A DNA stretch of 64,000 nucleotides, from assembly GCA_900088475.1 (NCBI GenBank), contig FLMG01002747.1:1-64000 (forward strand), in the 5' to 3' direction. A model generated the notes under the pieces. The model was not told where the DNA came from. It saw only the letters and a program-made list of their open reading frames with translations, and made no database searches. The stretch's first letter is position 1, and each line of letters begins with the position of its first letter. Shown here piece after piece: positions 40,908-63,841 of the stretch. The translations under genes and the position numbers were made by a program. Source of the DNA: Hyphochytrium catenoides. Taxonomy: Eukaryota > Protista > Hyphochytriomycota.

Positions 40908-43900
40908 ATGAAGAACCGCATGACCGTCGTAGATGTCAAGGTGATGGTGGAAGAGCTGAAGGAGAAGCTCGTTGGCATGCGGTGCGCGAATGTCTATGAT
41001 TACAATCAGAAGACCTATATGTTCAAGATGGCGCTGCCAGATAAACCGAAGATCTTCCTGCTCATGGAGTCAGGCATTAGATTCCACGCCACCGACTATG
41101 CCAGGTGACTGCCGCTCTTCTGCAGCGTTGCATTGGTCTATAAGAAGTATCACCGTTCCTCCCAAGTTCGGAGCTGATGAGAATATGTTGCTCCTCAACC
41201 GCGCCTGTGGAGCCTAGTATCTGCTTTTTTATAGAGCGCCGATAAGTCTTTGAGGCTTGGCTCACCCTCTTTGGCCCTCCCATGCTTTTCTTGCTCTTGG
41301 CTTAGGACCAGCCTTACGATCTTCTGAATGTCTAACCACTTCTCTACTAAAAACTCTTTTGGCAGAGAGAAATCAGACATCCCGTCAGGCTTCAGTATGA
41401 AGCTCCGTAAGCACATCCGGACCAAGAGATTAGAGAATGTACGACAATTTGGGATGGACCGCGTTGTCGATTTCCAGTTCGGTCTAGGAGAATCTGCCTT
41501 CCATGTGATACTGGAGCTTTACGCCTCAGGGAACATCATCCTCACAGACAGCAACTATGAGATCCTGAACCTGCTTCGAACCCACAAGTACGAAGAAGAT
41601 GTCGCTGTGGCGGTCCGTCAAGTGTATCCCATCTCTCATGCTGCAGATGGAAAGATAGAGCACATGCTGGAGGGTGAAGAGACAGACGACCAAGGCAAAA
41701 GAGTTTACCTCTCTGAGGAAGAGGTTGACGCTGCTGCCAGTCTGGCAGATATAATAAAGAGCATAAGTCCCACGCTGCTTGTGCGCTGGCTGCTGAAGAG
41801 AGCTTCAGAAATGTCAGCAGGGAATAGCGGAAACGCCAGGCAGGAGATTGATGCAGACAGTACCACTAAGGACAAAGGCAAGAAGCAGAAGGACAAAGGG
41901 AAGAAAGATTCTGAGAAAGCAAAGAAAGAGCAGGATAAGAAGCAAGCAAAGAAGCTAAACTTGAAGCAAATACTCTCATCCAAAGGCTCGGGCGTAGAGG
42001 CTTTTGGCCCAGTCGTGGTGGAGCATTGCCTCGTCTCTGCAGGTGAGCTTCGCCGCAGCTAAACCCTCTCCTATTCTGAAGCATCNNNNNNNNNNNNNNN
42101 NNNNNNNNNNNNNNNNNNNNNNNNNNNNNNNNNNNNNNNNNNNNNNNNNTCTACTTCCTTACTTCTCCGCTCAAGTCGGAATAATCCTCCCCCTTGAATC
42201 CGCTTCTTGACAACTGGACAACAGCGTCAACCCTTCGTCTCTCATCATGCGCTTGAATCAGCCGCTAAGAATGATCCCACAGGTCTCAAGCCAAACTTGA
42301 AGCTCACGAAAGCTGAAGATATTCCTGAGGAGAATGCAACGAAACTCCTGGAAGCACTTAGAGCCGCCCCGAGGCTTATAGAGTCGTTAGGGTCAGCAGC
42401 CAAAGATACTTCCTCTTCTCATTCTTCTTCGAGAACAGAGGGCTTCATTATCTTGACGGACGTGGTCAATGATTCTCAGCAGGTATGTCTGGCAGGTGCT
42501 AGTCTCCTCTTTTTACGTACGGGGGAGCTTCGAAGAGGACAGCAGAGCGACGACTGCTCAGCAAAGCTCTATTTATCGTCGTTATGGTTGGCGTTACAGC
42601 GTTCTGTCTCTTGGCAGCTCCTTACGGCGCTCTCAACAGGCGCGAATTGAATCGATGGACGGATCAAAGTTAGGAAAGGAGCAAGAGGGCGAGAGCGCTT
42701 TATATGAGGACTTTGTCCCTTACCTGTTTGCTCAATACCACGGTATGTTAGAAGGCTGTACTACCTAAAATTGCTTTGGAACGTCCCTTCGGACTGCTGC
42801 CACTCTGTGATCTCTTTAACATCATTTGCATCTAATCTTTACCTTGATTGACAGCCTGCGCATCGATGTTAATTCACCTTTCTTGATAAACAACCCAGGG
42901 TGCAAGTACATCCAGTTCCCTTCTTTCGGTGCCGCCGTGGATGAATACTTCTCTCGCATTGAATCTCAGCAGGCAGCAGTTAAGCGAGCGGCGGCAGAGA
43001 AAGCAGCCTTGCAGAAGGTATAGTTTGAAAGGGCTTCCCTCTTGCCATCCCTTCTCTATCCAAAGCTTGTATAGCTTCAATGAGATCCATGTACCTCTAT
43101 GTTAGACTGTATCTCATGCATTATAGGGAAACAAAGAGCATCTGCATCTCAGCACCTCTTAAACATTTCCCCATTGACGAGATTATGTTGGAGTCGGTCT
43201 TTTATGGCCGCGTTTGGCTCTCGTTGCTCAACGGGCTGTCTGACCTTTAACATTCTTCGTGAAGGTGGAGCGTATCCGTCAGGACCATCAATCCCGTATC
43301 AAGTCGCTAGATGAGGCTCAGAACGAGCTGAAAAGGAAGGCTTATCTTCTGGAGTACCATCAAGAAGACGTAGAAAAGGCTCTTTTAGGTACTGTTGCTT
43401 TATCTACCCGCATTCACTAGTGCCCCACTTCGCCCTCTGCTGTCTTTTTAAGCTTGTTTCTGTATGATCTTTCTTGTCTCTTAATGTGGCGCGTAAGGGA
43501 AGAGGGCATTAAAGTCACCGACATGTGGCTAGTTGGGACCTGATAAGAGAGAAGAATGGAAGACTTCTTCAAAGCGGGTGAAGAGCAGTTTAAAGATGTG
43601 TGAGATGTGTGCGAGATCCGCGATGGAGATGGACGAGGGGAGGGAGTTTCCTTGTTTTTTGCAACTTTTTATCGTCTCTTCTGCGGGATATCGTGTCGCT
43701 ATTCTCGCTGTCCTTCGTCTCTTACCATTCTCCAAAGTCCTGCGCAGTGCAGTGGAACATGGGGTTAATTGGAACGATCTATGGGAGATGGTGAAGCAAG
43801 AGCAGAAGAGTGGGCGCAACCCCGTGGCCAACCTTATTTTTAAACTCAAGCTTGCGGAACGGAAAGCTACCCTGATACTGGTAGGACAGTGAAAGAAGCC

Positions 43901-55708: not shown

Positions 55709-57040
55709 ATGTCCCAAGATAGTGAGGACCAACCCCTTCCCTGCAACGGGTCAAGTCATCCCAGGATGAAACCTTCAGCGACAGAGGAGCAGCCCTTAGG
55801 CTTCAGTCAGTTCTCAGCATTACGTTCAGGTCAGGTGGTCAGGAATAATAAGGGATCAAGTGAATCAACGCCCAGAACGAAGGCACGATTTTGGAGGTTG
55901 TCATTCCTCGGCAGTGCTTTCAAGTCTATATCGTTTTGGGCCTCATTGCTCAATCTTTTAGGCTCGGTGGGATATATTGCAGCAGATTTTGCTCGAGGAT
56001 ATATTGGAGAGCATGCCGCCTTCTCTGGTGCACTTTATATAGTCCTCGGCTTTAGCTTCCTCTTTGATGCAGTTCTTTACTTGCTCAGCTGGTACCCAGC
56101 ATGGCCAGAAAGACTTTATCCGGACTTTGCAGCAGAGGCTATCAACATTCTAGGCAGCTGCATATATGCATCGACGTCTATCATGTACCTTAAAGAGTAC
56201 AATCCTAACGAGAAGTTCGTGCTTATCGACGCAGTCATAATCTTGGAGTACATCGCAGCCGTTCTTTTTCTGTTTGATTCTCTTCTCTATGGCGTGCCCT
56301 GGTTCAGAGAGGCATGGCAACCATTCGTCGAACAGAGAAAGCTCGTGATAGAAAGGAAGAAGGAGAACAAGGAACGGGAGGAAGTGCCACTGCCTACTGC
56401 CACTTCCAGCAGTAGTCAAATAGAGAAGAGCGGCAGCAATAGAGGCATGCATCAACAACGTGCCATCACTGCTGCCCCGCAGAAAAAAGACATGGAGACT
56501 TGTATGGGTGGTGGGCATACGAGCAATGGACTAGTTGCTATTATTATGGCCTCAATTTGCAGCATAGGATTCTGGGAGAATGCACTGAACGTGCTCCCGT
56601 CACTTCTCTACGTCACCGGCGGCACTCTGGGTGTGTTCGTGCAGTTTTTTGAGGAGAAGGAGCTAGGTAAGTTTGTCGTCAACCAGAACATCTCTTGCCC
56701 TCAGGCCGCCAACTTGGAGCATTTTACCGCTTTTCTACGGAGCCAGAAGATCTACTATAAGGACGTCCGAGTGCCAGAAAGGTCACTATTTTGCAGGGGA
56801 GGAGAACTGCATATTGACTTGTTGAGATTAGATCATAAGGATATGAAGACCCTAGGGATCACCAACCCCAAGGTTGGGTTTGCGAGAGCCCTTCGTCTGG
56901 CTTCTCAGGTCTATGTGGTTGGTGACGTGCTGTGGTTCCTGGACGCGTTGATCTCCATGTTCTGCTGGTTCCGGAGCGTACGCAACTTATTTAAGGATAA
57001 GAAGGTCAAAGAAGGAAGCATAGCTAGTGAGGAAGCATGA
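55709..57040 (+). CDS. Intronless 6-TM membrane protein with threefold hairpin repeat (YrhK-like) and a SAM-like loop; paralog 1
   Basis: 443-aa ORF. Repeats LLNLLGSVGY..FLFDAVLYLLSW, INILGSCIY..FLFDSLLYGVPW, LNVLPSLLY..WFLDALISMFCW. Confidence 0.85.
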   Translation: MSQDSEDQPLPCNGSSHPRMKPSATEEQPLGFSQFSALRSGQVVRNNKGSSESTPRTKARFWRLSFLGSAFKSISFWASLLNLLGSVGYIAADFARGYIGEHAAFSGALYIVLGFSFLFDAVLYLLSWYPAWPERLYPDFAAEAINILGSCIYASTSIMYLKEYNPNEKFVLIDAVIILEYIAAVLFLFDSLLYGVPWFREAWQPFVEQRKLVIERKKENKEREEVPLPTATSSSSQIEKSGSNRGMHQQRAITAAPQKKDMETCMGGGHTSNGLVAIIMASICSIGFWENALNVLPSLLYVTGGTLGVFVQFFEEKELGKFVVNQNISCPQAANLEHFTAFLRSQKIYYKDVRVPERSLFCRGGELHIDLLRLDHKDMKTLGITNPKVGFARALRLASQVYVVGDVLWFLDALISMFCWFRSVRNLFKDKKVKEGSIASEEA

Positions 57041-58895
57041 TGGAGCCTACAATGCTCTATTAGCTTGGTAGAAGAGGTGTGATAGCCGCAAAGTAAAAGA
57101 AGGAAGGTGGCCTCGCAATCGTTCTTTGGATGCGACAATAACGAAAGACGCCTGTCCATCCCTGACTTCTTGTCGTGGTAGAGTGCCTGTACTTAGAGAT
57201 GGCTAGTTATGAGACTGTTATATTGTCCTATTTGTGGTGCCTCTCTTGATAGTGTACTGACTTCTATTGTTCCTGCTACTACGCTACTAGGGTGAGCCTC
57301 CAACGCTACTCTTCATTCGCTGAGTTCTCTCTGTTCCCACTCTTCTACCATCTTCCTTTCTAGCGCTGCGGGGCGCGAGAATACTCCTGCCTATAAAGCC
57401 CTGGCCAGAAGAGTGAGAGCAAAAGTGACTGGAGCTTCTCCTCATCATGATCAGCGCCGCCACTGAAGGAGAAGCGAGACAGTAGTAGAGAAATGAAGGT
57501 AAAAGAGATTGGGAAGCTAATAAATCAAGTCTTTAGTATCGCTGAGCACAATGATGATGTCCAGGAAGGTCAACCGATCAGCCCTGACCTGCTGCCATCA
57601 CTGCCCCTCTTCCTTCAAAAACTAAACTAGGATTCTTCTTCCTTCTCCAACATTAATAGTGAGGCAGGAGGAGGAGGAGAACGCGTTGAAGAGTCAACCA
57701 GAGCTTTGTAGCTTCTCGTCTCCTCTTCACCTTTCTTCGTCTTCTCCTTCTTCTTCTTCTCTTCCCGCCTCTTTCTTCTTCTTCTTCATCCACTTCTTCT
57801 TAGTAGTAGTAGAGCTAGCAAGGCCAGCTGTAAGGCCTTAGTAGTTTTCCTAGTAATAAAAGAATGGAGAAGGAATCGATATTCTCTCGTCCGTTACAGG
57901 CCGGGCTGATGCCTGGACCGTTAGCGGCTCTCCACAGGAATGTAGGGATGGATCTCCTTGGAAACTTCAAGTGACCCATCGCCTGGCACCTTCTTCCCAC
58001 GCTGTCGCTCCACTAGCAGCAGGGAAGGAAGGACCCGACTGGAAACAGTCACCGACAGATGAGAGAGAGACAGAGCGAAGAGAGAGAGAGTGAGAGAGTG
58101 GACGAGAAGAGAAAGAGAGGAACAGAGAGTGTGAGAGAGAGAGGAAGAGAAAGTGTGAGAGAGAGAGGAACAGAGAAAGACAGGGGAAGAGAGGAAGGGA
58201 GAGAGAGAGGAGACAGAGCCAGAGAGAAGACACATGAGAGAACACAGAGCAACAAAGAGAGAGAGAAAGGGCTGAGTGGTGCACAGACACAGCAGCGGTT
58301 GGCAGGCAGGTTAACCAACAGTCTCATAGAGAGGTACAAGAGAAAGGCTGATCCTTCTTAGAAAAAGTCCGTCAATTTCCAGTGGTCGTAGAGGCTAATA
58401 ACTAAGAAAAGGAGCAGAACATGATTCCGTTGACACCTCAGCACACCGCCTGCTGGATCTCAGGCAGCTAATCGCCTTCTCCTCAACCATGAGAATGGCT
58501 CTTGAAGAGGGAGGTAACTGATTATAATGATGGACTGTGGTGCATCTCGGCAGTAAAGAAGTAGTAGCGAGCCCAGCCACCCACACAAGCAGAAAGTGAG
58601 GCCACCATAGGATGGTGAGGACGCTTTGATAGAGATGATAACGTTGTTTTGTCTAGATGTCTCTTACTTCTCTTTGTTCCCGCTTTCTCCTCCAGTATGA
58701 AAAGTTACCAGGCCCTTTTTGCTAGTCCTGCGCCGCCGTTGTGCAGAAGTAGTAGAAGTTAGAGCACAGGGTCGCACGCTGATGAGAAACACTGACAGCG
58801 TCATGTCCAGACAGAATTGAGCATTAGTTGTCCTGCTCCTCATCACGCGACGGTCGTTATCACCCTGTCATAATGGACAAACGCCGAGATCTACA

Positions 58896-60239
58896 ATGCG
58901 GGTAGGCCATCGCCGGAAGACCGAGGCCGAGGTCTGCTGGTCCTTCCAGAAGCTTGGGACCTTGGCCTTCTGGAACTCGCTTCTCAATGTTCTGGGTTCA
59001 GCAGGTTATGTGGCCCAGTGGGCGGCCATATTTATGGTCAATGAAGAGGAAGTCTTCGGCTATTCCCAAAGATTCATTACGCTGGTGCTGGCTTTCATTG
59101 TCTTGGTTGACTCACTTCTATCTCTCTCCCTCTCACTCCGGGGCCCAGCTGGCCCACAGCCTTTCTTCCCTGACCTTGCTGCCGCGCTTCTAAACGTCGT
59201 CGGGAGTATTATCTATGGCGTAACGGCGGTTATGACAGACGAGGGATATATTCTTCTACTAGAGTACATCGCTGCGCTTATCTTTCTGATAGACTCAGTC
59301 CTATACTGCATGCCTTGGTATGAGGACGCTGGAAAGAAGATAGACAGTGGAGAGAAGAAAAGAAGGAGCTCTTCCTCTCCTCTCAGTATCCGACGTCATC
59401 ATGGTGATATTCACAAGACTGGCAAGAGAAAGAAAGAGCAAGCATGGGAATGGAAGACTCTGTTGTCTTCCTTAACCTCCTTTCCCTTTCTTCGAATCCT
59501 GGCGTCTGAAGCATTGTCTCTTGAGTTCTGGGAGCATGCGCTAAATATTCTTCCTTCCTTACTCTACGTTTTAGCGGGCACGTTGGGACTTTGGCTCTTC
59601 GTGCTTCAAAGAGGTCAGGATTTTTATCTCTGGTATCTTCTAAATTATCGATGCACCTCGCGAGGGAGGCCTAGAAACCGGCTTTCTCTCTCTGCCCTCG
59701 TCCAAGGAGCTGGAGAAGGGAGAGAGAAGGGGTCTCGCCGTCAACGTTGCTTCTTCTCCAGAGGAGAGAAGACGGTCACCAACGTCATACTTTACGCAGA
59801 GACACTTCAAGCACTGAATCTATGGGTCTACGTCCTGGCAGATACACTCTGGCTTTTAGATGCTTTTCTTATAATGCAGTCGAGTATCCAAAGTGCAAGA
59901 GAGGAAGAGAGAGAAGTAGGTAAGAGGCGAGGGCAAGTCGAGAGGAAGAAAGAACCAACGGATGGCAGTCTGAAGGCAGATACTCTACATCTCTTTCCGA
60001 TAGCGCTTGACAGCCAACAGAGGGATGGGAAAGAAGATTTTCGCCTCTCTCTCTCTCTCTTCCATCATGAAGAAGACAATACCGTGGCGGCTAGAACTCG
60101 AAAGAGACCAGTGCAGCAAGCACCTGAGCTCTCTCGCTCTTCTTGGCCAAGATATGAGACCGTTGGGGCCCCTTCCCTCCCTATCCCTTATCAACCCCAG
60201 GGCACTCTGGCTTTATCACCTCCTTCTCTATTCACCTGA
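58896..60239 (+). CDS. Intronless 6-TM membrane protein, paralog 2
   Basis: 447-aa ORF colinear with paralog 1: FWNSLLNVLGSAGY, PDLAAALLNVVGSIIY, LEYIAALIFLIDSVLYCMPW, FWEHALNILPSLLY, YVLADTLWLLDAF. Confidence 0.85.
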   Translation: MRVGHRRKTEAEVCWSFQKLGTLAFWNSLLNVLGSAGYVAQWAAIFMVNEEEVFGYSQRFITLVLAFIVLVDSLLSLSLSLRGPAGPQPFFPDLAAALLNVVGSIIYGVTAVMTDEGYILLLEYIAALIFLIDSVLYCMPWYEDAGKKIDSGEKKRRSSSSPLSIRRHHGDIHKTGKRKKEQAWEWKTLLSSLTSFPFLRILASEALSLEFWEHALNILPSLLYVLAGTLGLWLFVLQRGQDFYLWYLLNYRCTSRGRPRNRLSLSALVQGAGEGREKGSRRQRCFFSRGEKTVTNVILYAETLQALNLWVYVLADTLWLLDAFLIMQSSIQSAREEEREVGKRRGQVERKKEPTDGSLKADTLHLFPIALDSQQRDGKEDFRLSLSLFHHEEDNTVAARTRKRPVQQAPELSRSSWPRYETVGAPSLPIPYQPQGTLALSPPSLFT

Positions 60240-60661
60240 ACGCTTACTGACTGGGAGGGCGCCTTCCCCTTAACGATCATGGACGTAGGATAGGTCGAAT
60301 GCAAAATTTTCTTCCTTGACCTCCGAGCTACGTATGGCCTACCAAGCGTCGAACACGGGAAAGAACGCATGCAAGGACGGCTCTCCCTCTGTCGCATCGC
60401 TTCCTCTCTTTCTATCCTCTTGCTTCTTTGTTTATTATTGAATCTCTGTTTCTCTTTAACGAGGGCCCAGCTAAGTTCCTAGCAATCAGCTGTCCGAAGC
60501 TTAGTAAATCCTGTCTTCCCTGCTATAAAATATATAAACCTCGTGTATCTTGGTCTTCTCGCTGTACCTCTCTCTCTCCGATCGTTTAGTTCGTTTTCCC
60601 TTACTCTGTTTGACGCTATTGTCTCTTCTTGCCAAGTCTCGCTCTTGTCTATTCTTGCCAA

Positions 60662-60813
60662 GTCTCTCTCTTCTCTCTCAGTCTCTCTCTTCTGTCTCGG
60701 TCTCTCTCTTCTCTCTCAGTCTCTCTCTTCTCTCTCGATCTCTCTCTTCTCTCTCAGTCTCTCTCTTCTCTCTCGGTCTCTCTCTTCTCTCTCAGTCTCT
60801 CTCTTCTCTCTCG
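60662..60813. repeat. Minisatellite: 8 x 19 bp, organised as 4 x 38 bp
   Basis: Unit gtctctctcttctctctc(a/g); the terminal base alternates strictly A,G,A,G across the eight copies. Confidence 0.9.
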
Positions 60814-61420
60814 GTCTCTTGTATGATATCTGCTTTGCTGCGCTTCCGCGTCTCTCTTTCCTCTTCTCACTCCCTGCTTTCTATCCCCTAATCTCTCTCT
60901 GTCTTCATCTGCTCTCTTCTCTCCCCTCTCAGGTGGGGAAGGTACGGCAGCTCTAAACCAGGGAAAGGCACGCCATCTGATTCTCCAGCATCCGTTACTG
61001 AAGTGACCGCTAACGTGCGGCTCCTCGCTTCTCAAGGCTCCGCCTCAAGCTTCGTCTACTATCAATCTCTCCTCTCTTCTCCTACTTCTTTTAGCCCCTC
61101 TTAGCTCTTCTATTTGGCTCACTGTCTCTCTCTCTCTTTTCTCTCTCCGTCGCCTCTCTCTGTCCTCTTCCTAGTCTGTCCTCTCTCTCCCTCCTTATGT
61201 CTGCCTGCCTCTCTCTCTCTCCTCACTCTCTCTCCACTCTGTCTCTCTCCTTCTCTCACTCTCTCGGCCCCACATATCTCTTTACTCCTTCTTCTAGGGA
61301 GTGCCACCTTCACTCCTCGGTCCTCCGTTTCCTCTCTTGTCTTTGGCTTCAAATATTGATATTCCCGCATTCCCTTCTTCCCCGCGATATTAGGGACCGC
61401 ATGATCTCTTCGAGTTGCTG

Positions 61421-62392
61421 ATGAGCACCAAGGAAGAGAGGAAGACCAAAGCAGGGCCATTCTCTCTCGCTCTCTTCTTTGCTGCTTCTTCCAAGCCTCC
61501 GCACCCTGGCCTTCTGGAGCTCTCTTCTTGATATCTTGGGCTCTGCAGGCTATGTGGCCCAATGGGGCGCCCTCCTTATGGTCGATGAAGAGGAAATCTT
61601 CGGTTATTCTCATAGGTTTGTTACGCTGGTGCTGGCCATGCATGATAATGCTTCTTAACTCTCTGTTCTCTCTCTCTTCCTCTTTATCTCTCTCTCTCTT
61701 TCCCTCGATCTCTTTCTCTAGCTCTCTATCCTGCTTAGAAATACTGGCCGAAGTGCTCAACGTCCTCGGCAGTGTTCTTTATGGCATAACCGCGGTGTTG
61801 ACTCAAGAGAGAGAGACTCTCGTCCTCGAGTACATTGCATCGATTGTCTTCCTCGTAGGTTCTCTCCTCTACTGCTTCACATGGTACCATCAAGTAGAAC
61901 ATGTGGCTAGAGACTGCCGCGAAGGGAAGAAGAAAGATAGCGAAAGCTATCAGGGCGTCGTGAAGAGAGAAGGGAACCTGGGAAAGGGGAAGTTCTCTCT
62001 TTCCTCTTCTCTCCATCTCACCTCCCCTTCGCCATTTAGCTTAGAGCTCTGGAAACATGCGCTCAATGTCTTTCCTGCCTTTCTGTACGTCCTTGCGGGA
62101 AATGTGGGACTCTGGCTCTTTATGCTGCCGGGTAATGGCGACACTGAGCCTCGACGTCTAGGTAGACAAGGAGGAACTTTTTGTCTGTCTCCTCTGCTGT
62201 GTCTTCACCCTTCGGTTAGCCTCCTCTCTGGTAATGATGCTTTGTCTTCCGCTCTGCCTTCTCGGTCTCTCAGGTCCTCTTCTCTCTTTCAGCTACTCTT
62301 GTCTCTCTTTTCCATACATTAAAGCTTTGTCTCTTACGTCCACTCTCGATTCTTTCCTTCTCTCTCTCTTCTGCAGGCCTGTTGACTTCATT

Positions 62393-62430
<38 letters not shown>

Positions 62431-62846
62431 TTGGAAAAGGACCCTTCTCTCTCAGAAACGAGGAAGAGAGTTGTCCCATAAATGCAAACAATAGTGATCC
62501 GCTCCTTTGGTATCTCTTGACGCACGGCATTCCCCTGATAGCTGAAAGAGGAAGAAGGACAAAAGTAGCCGCAGCAGCAGCAGTCTCTCTCCCTTCTTCT
62601 CTCTCACAGGACTATAGACAAACAGTAGAGAACGCCGTCTCTCAGCACAGAGTCTCGCTTGAAAAAGGGAGTCTAGGGCTTTATGTGCTAGCTGACTGTC
62701 TCTGGTTCTTGGGAGCGATGCTCTCACTGCACTCAAGTATGACAAGTGCTAGAGAAGAGAGAGAGGGACAAGGCCAAGAAGAAGATGACAAGCTAGAGAG
62801 AGATGGGACTAGATCAGCTATGGTCTATAGTTACACTCCATTGTGA
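61421..62846 (+). pseudogene. Paralog 3 of the 6-TM family, frameshifted
   Basis: TLAFWSSLLDILGSAGYVAQWGALLMVDEEEIFGYSHRFVTLVLA closely matches paralog 2. A CATG-CATG duplication (61637-61644) shifts the frame, there is no in-frame ATG upstream, and TM5 and TM6 lie in different ORFs. Confidence 0.75.
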
Positions 62847-63367: not shown

Positions 63368-63841
63368 CTACTGCATCTTCTCTTGAACTACAGCTGTTTG
63401 CCCAACGATCCGGCCCATAACTCCCTGCGCCGCTTGCCCTACGCCATGAAGAGATTGGTGAAAGATGTAGACTCCTGCCCACACAGCGCTAGACACGAAG
63501 ATTCCCATCATCCGTAAGCCAAAGTCCAGTCCGCTCTTCACCATGGGACGCACGGAGGAGAAAGGGCAGAAGAGAGACGTGATGACCTCCGATGGGTTAT
63601 AAAAGTCTTCCTGAGAGGCAATGACCCATCTTAACGCTTGTCTCTTCTCTTTTCCTTCTTCTCCCGCTTCTTGTTGTTCTTCTGGTCGTAGAAGTCTGAG
63701 AGTGAAGAGCGAGAGGACCCTAATCTCTGTCTTGGAAGGGAAGAATAGAGGATGGATGTGATACCGCACTTCGGTCATGACTGTAAGTTTCTCCCTGTCA
63801 ATGACTGCAACCGAGGATGGCATAAAGAGGATGGTCAGCAC
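63368..63841 (-). CDS. 3' part of a putative NTF2-like (SigF-like) protein; 5' end unresolved or beyond the window
   Basis: SVAVIDREKLTV..PLFFP..IRVLSLFTLRL..RWVIASQEDFYNPSEV resembles the beta-rich NTF2-like family with an I..QED.Y motif. In-frame stops lie immediately upstream, so it may be disrupted. Confidence 0.45.
   Translation of the reverse strand: MLTILFMPSSVAVIDREKLTVMTEVRYHIHPLFFPSKTEIRVLSLFTLRLLRPEEQQEAGEEGKEKRQALRWVIASQEDFYNPSEVITSLFCPFSSVRPMVKSGLDFGLRMMGIFVSSAVWAGVYIFHQSLHGVGQAAQGVMGRIVGQTAVVQEKMQ

Follow-up and report, generated by a model that had tools for sequence, protein, structure and literature searches.

A tandem array of six-helix membrane proteins in Hyphochytrium catenoides, probably a divergent YrhK-like branch with a predicted intramembrane ring of Asn and Asp

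Three related genes encoding six-helix membrane proteins stand head to tail on the forward strand within a 64,000-nucleotide stretch of the Hyphochytrium catenoides genome (assembly GCA_900088475.1, contig FLMG01002747.1, positions 1 to 64,000; hereafter the window). Two of the copies are intact and the third, in the present assembly, is broken. Each intact protein is composed of three helical hairpins in which an Asn recurs in the first helix and an Asp in the second, and comparison with known families makes it very probable that these proteins form a divergent branch of the YrhK-like superfamily (PF14145) that the Pfam model misses. The overall explanation that we favor, with somewhat better than an even chance of being right, is that the locus represents an old tandem triplication of a six-helix protein of this branch, in which a ring of Asn and Asp would act as a cation or proton site. 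As judged from the alignments, what is new here is the putative acidic-ring variant, while the YrhK-like kind and the three-hairpin layout are already known.

The first copy is an intact single-exon open reading frame (ORF) at 55709-57040 (+) encoding 443 amino acids (aa) and six transmembrane (TM) helices, as defined by the ORF call, BLASTP against copy 2 and hydropathy. Its hairpin 1 (TM1-TM2) occupies 55922-56098 (+), hairpin 2 (TM3-TM4), which carries a conserved TM4 Glu, 56114-56311 (+), and hairpin 3 56558-56980 (+), where a long loop separates TM5 (56558-56659) from TM6 (56894-56980). Asn is present in TM1, TM3 and TM5 and Asp in TM2, TM4 and TM6, the last helix bearing both a G-D and a D-A motif. 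The TM5-TM6 loop of this copy (56657-56905) has no Pfam match, and no match among PDB sequences even at an expectation value (E) <= 10.

Copy 2, also an intact single-exon ORF (58896-60239, +), encodes 447 aa with the same six-helix layout, and its C-terminus extends about 100 residues beyond the conserved core. Hairpin 1 lies at 58956-59141 (+; Asn31, Tyr38, Asp72), hairpin 2 at 59163-59327 (+; Asn100, Ser104, Tyr107, Glu123, Asp133, Tyr137, Trp141) and hairpin 3 at 59514-59894 (+), with TM5 at 59514-59615 (Asn217, Tyr224) and TM6 at 59808-59894 (Asp316, Asp322). The two proteins share 29% identity over 386 columns (BLASTP, E 1e-35). Together with the broken third copy, they stand with start-to-start spacings of about 3.2 and 2.6 kb, in agreement with the three same-strand paralogs some 3 kb apart described by the original prediction, which was made from the DNA letters and their open reading frames alone. 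Both intact copies are collinear, as single ORFs, with compact homologs such as the relative P0004, and can therefore be taken as intronless, as had also been claimed. When copy 2 was compared in six frames with the entire 61-Mb assembly, only copies 1-3 were matched, and the outcome was the same with the family profile, which is closest to copy 1 among the three (220.6 bits).

Hydropathy resolves six hydrophobic membrane helices arranged in three pairs in both intact copies, and the helices of the AlphaFold2 model agree. The odd helices carry N-x-x-[GP]-S-x-x-Y and the even helices x-x-D-[AS], in most cases with a Tyr and a Trp further on. The sole lapse is hairpin 1 of copy 2, which has V in place of the F/W that precedes the Asp by three residues and lacks the final Trp; apart from this, the motif-bearing six-TM layout that had been proposed is confirmed. 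When sub-alignments of the individual hairpins were compared using hhalign, hairpins 1 and 2 matched with E 1e-5, hairpins 1 and 3 with E 1e-4, and hairpins 2 and 3 with E 3e-3, the Asn, Gly/Pro-Ser, Tyr and Asp coinciding in register. By this measure the three hairpins are detectably homologous to one another, beyond chance, which upholds the threefold hairpin repeat of the earlier description.

To place these proteins, a profile of the three copies was run against 1.84 billion representative proteins in a full hidden Markov model scan, which returned 86 proteins at E <= 1e-3, of which 35 scored at E <= 1e-10, with a top score of 99.8 bits. All relatives looked up are unnamed or annotated as 'hypothetical', belong to clusters of one to four members and derive mostly from metagenome or run assemblies. 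The family is rare and unnamed. Both motifs occur up to three times per relative, and P0004 (284 aa) possesses three complete hairpins. Word-index homology searches with copy 1 and the copy 2 core recovered no relatives, metagenome searches for members of the family gave no match, the window proteins and the two family members tested had no match in NCBIfam, and no relative was found when PDB sequences were searched with the family profile. The claim that the family is uncharacterised stands, with unnamed relatives and no match to a characterised family in Pfam, NCBIfam or PDB sequences.

Conservation was counted across 58 aligned members, unless stated otherwise, using the numbering of copy 2. 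The best-conserved positions in the relatives are the Asn, Tyr and Asp of the motifs. Asn31, Asn100 and Asn217 are kept in 28/58, 54/58 and 46/53 members, respectively; Tyr38, Tyr107 and Tyr224 in 55/58, 48/58 (plus 9 with Phe) and 51/52; and Asp72, Asp133 and Asp322 in 40/58, 39/58 (plus 11 with Ser) and 42/51. The original prediction had named loss of the Asn and Asp among homologs as a result that would speak against it, and both are conserved in this alignment. Two further conserved acidic residues lie beyond the motif first described, namely Glu123 in TM4 (38/58) and Asp316 in TM6 (46/52). Considering the three ring sites jointly in 51 members, an acidic residue occupies all three in 27, two in 15, one in 6 and none in 3.

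The key residues of each helix fall within 65 degrees of the center of the conserved helix face, so they are predicted to be buried rather than lipid-facing. Lysine and arginine together reach a density of 0.121 on the membrane side that bears the termini vs 0.074 at the tips of the hairpins, and in 56/58 members the former is the richer of the two. By prediction, this places both termini in the cytosol. Counted along the helices, the Asn and Asp within each hairpin lie at a similar depth, in the membrane half nearer the termini.

YrhK-like proteins are present in bacteria, archaea and eukaryotes; to our knowledge, none has an established function. The forms we take to be typical are the single-hairpin YrhK of B. 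subtilis and three-repeat proteins of roughly 240-270 aa from bacteria and rotifers. Among Pfam families, only PF14145 was matched repeatedly by the new family, in 14/58 members at E <= 0.01 (best E 1.1e-6), these matches lying below the family's curated threshold. For a decoy-controlled test, a model was built from 47 canonical YrhK hairpins and scored on family, reversed and shuffled sequences. The 88 family sequences reached a median of 7.4 bits, with 16 at >=15 bits and a maximum of 40.7, vs a median of 0.2 bits, a single sequence at >=15 bits and a maximum of 16.2 for their reversed versions, and a median of about 0 bits, none at >=15 bits and a maximum of 3.2 for the shuffled ones. The difference between family and reversed decoys is highly significant (paired Wilcoxon p = 4e-14). 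Under this model copy 1 scored 16.0 bits and copy 2 only 3.6. Moreover, the nearest protein-language-model clusters are eukaryotic, with 15-32% of their members carrying PF14145 (scores of 0.86 for copy 2 and 0.91 for P0004). The two helices of the canonical hairpin are similar, which makes the phase of individual hairpin matches ambiguous.

The same genome encodes two canonical three-repeat YrhK proteins, each as a single ORF with three PF14145 stretches: one on contig C305 (L006:1216-2460, -; 65.4 bits) and one on contig C2920 (L009:1144-2160, +; 38.1 bits). They provide a point of comparison for the acidic-ring branch from within one genome. BLASTP of copy 2 against these two proteins gave no significant match. 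The three-repeat layout is common to them, to bacterial 'YrhK family proteins' and to rotifer proteins, so that six helices in three hairpins represent the usual form of a multi-repeat YrhK protein rather than a novelty of this locus. The resemblance of the unit to a YrhK-like hairpin, which had been noted from the letters, is borne out by family scores well above both sets of decoys and by the PF14145 matches. It is on this evidence that we regard both the identity and the placement of the family as very probable.

To evaluate the fold, an AlphaFold2 model was computed from the 58-sequence alignment, giving a predicted local distance difference test (pLDDT) score of 79.9 and a predicted template modelling (pTM) score of 0.76. 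Within the TM helices, most blocks of 10 residues score about 90 or more, and prediction is poor for the TM4-TM5 and TM5-TM6 loops. The check for six TM helices that had been called for returned a predicted six-helix bundle, which superposes at modest Z on several known structures. In an exhaustive VIA-align search, the model aligned with TMEM45A (7oqz; Z 12.5, root-mean-square deviation 3.8 Å, 181 residues), a designed single-chain antiparallel six-helix barrel (8qad; Z 11.1, 2.9 Å, 142/145 residues), SatP (5ys3; Z 10.0, 3.3 Å, 162/188 residues) and the urea channel UreI (3ux4; Z 9.9, 4.2 Å, 174/180 residues), followed by G-protein-coupled receptors and rhodopsins at Z 9.2 and below. The close fit to the 8qad barrel and to the SatP and UreI channels suggests that the three hairpins are arranged as an up-and-down barrel, giving a six-helix barrel-like bundle in the predicted model.

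These features can be combined into a possible mechanism. In the new branch, polar residues have taken the place of the packing residues of the canonical YrhK motif, so that the predicted buried faces hold three Asn, three Asp, a Tyr triad, the TM4 Glu and the TM6 Asp, and the Asn and Asp are predicted to lie in that half of the bilayer which faces the cytosol. The six helices would be arranged like a barrel about a pseudo-threefold axis, and a central path would be lined by the Asn and Tyr triads of TM1/3/5 and the Asp triad of TM2/4/6. The Asn/Asp ring may then serve as a binding and selectivity site for cations or protons, its carboxylates providing the selectivity, and the Tyr triad as the constriction. 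SatP offers a model for such an arrangement, with one residue from each of three helices meeting at the center of a single-chain six-helix pore: its monomer has six helices, and its central pore constriction is formed by three conserved residues, F17, Y72 and L131 (PMC8379382). The yeast relative of SatP, Ato1, has likewise been modelled with both termini inside the cell (PMC8379382). By analogy, the Asn and Tyr triads could be the part that resembles the SatP constriction. A function as a cation or proton pore or carrier is advanced here only tentatively, at less than an even chance. It is doubtful that the proteins represent a whole unrecognised class of single-chain, pseudo-threefold six-helix-barrel cation/proton channels derived from YrhK hairpins, with an Asp3/Asn3 selectivity ring and a Tyr-triad gate.

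Several observations weigh against this explanation. The curated cut-off of PF14145 is 26.1 bits; copies 2 and 3 score below it (11.7 and 16.1 bits), copy 1 has no match, and the homologs checked individually reached at most 25.5 bits. Alignment of the family with a canonical three-repeat YrhK alignment by hhalign gave 97.5% probability and E 7e-12, collinear over the three hairpins, and the reversed canonical alignment still gave 96.3% and E 1.6e-9. As the reversed control is nearly equal, that score reflects mostly a generic helix pattern; we dropped it as proof of YrhK kinship and relied on the decoy-controlled model instead. Foldseek found no match in the PDB for either of two models, and all VIA-align matches have Z below about 13, a range that the tool rates as common for helical bundles. 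The long homologs contain no recognisable extra domains and offer no informative domain fusions. A literature search on YrhK found the gene only as a hypothetical operon member, with no functional data. In addition, the ring Asp is frequently Ser in members of the family, a substitution that suits polar packing as well as an ion site.

This last point leads to the main alternative, a structural one, in which the polar residues form interhelix hydrogen bonds that replace G-S packing, and the protein is a non-conducting scaffold, a regulatory subunit or a sensor. We consider this possible, though on the unlikely side. It agrees with the position of the Asp, at the packing-Gly site of canonical YrhK, and of the Asn, at the Phe site, and with the similar depth of both residues on neighboring helices of one hairpin. 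The replacement of Asp by Ser, the change of the hairpin-1 Asn to Tyr or Gln, and fold matches no stronger than usual for helical bundles all fit it as well. However, five conserved carboxylates in one small bundle would carry a heavy energetic cost for mere packing, more than half of the 51 members scored have an acidic residue at all three ring sites, and the model superposes on barrel-type single-chain pores.

The same buried residues could instead belong to an intramembrane enzyme, such as a lipid hydrolase or transferase, with the Asp, Glu and Tyr catalytic or metal-binding. Conserved buried carboxylates and tyrosines near the cytosolic leaflet would suit such a role, and the top fold match, TMEM45A, is itself a protein of unknown function. 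However, the polar set is repeated threefold, which speaks for a symmetric site rather than a single asymmetric active site; the set has no conserved His or Lys/Arg partner, and no enzyme family was matched in Pfam, NCBIfam or PDB sequences. We therefore judge an enzyme improbable and retain the cation/proton site as our working explanation.

Regarding the origin of the array, a tree of 62 family members groups the three copies in a single clade with the topology (1,(2,3)), with Shimodaira-Hasegawa-like approximate likelihood ratio test (SH-aLRT) values of 97 and 97. Between copy 2 and the pieces of copy 3, the ratio of nonsynonymous to synonymous divergence (dN/dS) is 0.14-0.26, and dS is 0.8-1.8, near saturation. 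From the tree and the sequence divergence, the three copies are, in our reading, an old lineage-specific tandem expansion with one member decaying. The birth-and-death expansion that had been proposed is consistent with the single clade and the frameshifted third copy.

Copy 3 extends over 61491-62768 (+) in pieces, recovered by the six-frame search as 61491-61676, 61642-62136 and 62616-62837. The first piece (61491-61655, +) encodes TM1 together with the first half of TM2. Aligned at the nucleotide level with copy 2, copy 3 shows a +1 insertion near 61636, halfway through TM2, which shifts the frame and leads to a TAA at 61656-61658; the remainder of TM2 resumes in another frame. The second piece (61717-62142, +), in a different frame, encodes hairpin 2 and TM5, with the hairpin-2 Asp changed to Gly. 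In the third (62646-62768, +) the frame has changed again; it encodes TM6, where the Asp of D-A is Gly and that of the G-D type is retained. All three ring Asp sites are consequently altered (Asn, Gly, Gly). The frame change between TM5 and TM6 spans about 500 bases of CT-rich sequence (62143-62645) and could be a gained intron or a second disruption. The low dN/dS indicates that copy 3 was constrained through most of its history, and it would be either a recent pseudogene or a copy affected by an assembly indel.

Hairpin 1 of copy 3 also presents an apparent swap, with Asn31 changed to Asp (61509-61511) and the hairpin-1 Asp changed to Asn (61657-61659). Each change is a single transition in a frameshifted copy, and no such swap occurs among the 58 aligned homologs. 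It could hint at mutual contact between the two residues.

A retrocopy or a horizontal acquisition of the copies had been offered as possible sources. What would favor either is that copies 1 and 2 are single ORFs and that a nearby conserved gene is split. That gene is represented by an ORF at 41328-42062 (+), whose match to the NFACT_N profile (E 9e-15) is confined to positions 63-214 out of 456; the ORF probably represents a single exon from an NFACT (Tae2/NEMF-type) ribosome quality-control gene with several exons. Of the intron-containing neighbors previously described, support was found for this one gene only. However, both canonical YrhK genes located elsewhere in this genome consist of a single ORF as well. 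GC content is about 0.48-0.50 per 2-kb window between 54 and 64 kb, vs 0.45-0.52 over the whole window, and thus does not differ from the flanks; the copies form an old clade of tandem duplicates, as their dS attests; and the nearest language-model clusters are eukaryotic. Tandem arrays are the product of unequal crossing-over, not retroposition, so the arrangement itself argues against a retrocopy. Both origins are accordingly very improbable, and an old tandem expansion by unequal crossing-over is the account that we retain.

Two features of the surrounding DNA can be mentioned. The spacers that separate the copies, at 57900-58400 and 60500-61450, contain long CT/GA-rich low-complexity tracts that yield Ser-Leu or Glu-Arg runs on translation in several frames, and the interval from 60 to 62 kb has a strong strand skew (GC skew -0.275, AT skew -0.335). 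On the opposite strand, an ORF at 63368-63841 (-) falls at the borderline of a match to the SigF NTF2-like domain PF24840, with 24.9 bits vs a cut-off of 25.

In the new branch, the bland Gly-Ser helix contacts of YrhK appear to have been turned into a conserved charged and polar intramembrane ring. Charged or polar rings within the membrane usually mark an ion site, and the ring therefore provides an orphan superfamily with a hypothesis testable by mutagenesis. With lengths of about 260-320 aa, the compact homologs would be conveniently small for structural work and electrophysiology. If the proposed class of cation/proton channels were real, it would be the first lead to a function for the YrhK superfamily as a whole; if the polar residues are structural only, the locus would be no more than an orphan membrane protein that has expanded in one lineage in the ordinary way.

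Among known systems, TMEM45A (DUF716) is the best structural match, at a Z of 12.5 that lies within the usual helical-bundle range. The DUF716 model matched neither the window proteins nor the 58 family members in Pfam searches, and we know of no threefold repeat or Asn/Asp motif in TMEM45A. One report describes that protein as poorly characterised (PMC13056615). UreI (AmiS) is similar in being a six-helix single-protomer channel fold, and differs in having no sequence match to the new family. Its lining is aromatic and aliphatic, and its solute is neutral. SatP, of the AceTr (GPR1/FUN34/YaaH) family, is likewise a single-chain six-TM bundle, constricted by one residue from each of three helices. 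Nevertheless, AceTr has no Pfam or PDB sequence match to the new family, and the constriction of SatP is hydrophobic and its cargo anions, whereas the predicted ring of the new family is acidic. Canonical YrhK proteins share the two-helix hairpin unit, three of which make up a chain with six TM helices, and a first-helix G-S-x-x-[YF] motif in matching register, the [GP]-S being kept in the new family. They differ in that the second-helix G-S of YrhK is D-[AS] in the new family and that the Phe three residues before the first-helix G-S is Asn. The new family, in turn, has long and variable TM4-TM5 and TM5-TM6 loops and adds the conserved TM4 Glu and TM6 Asp.

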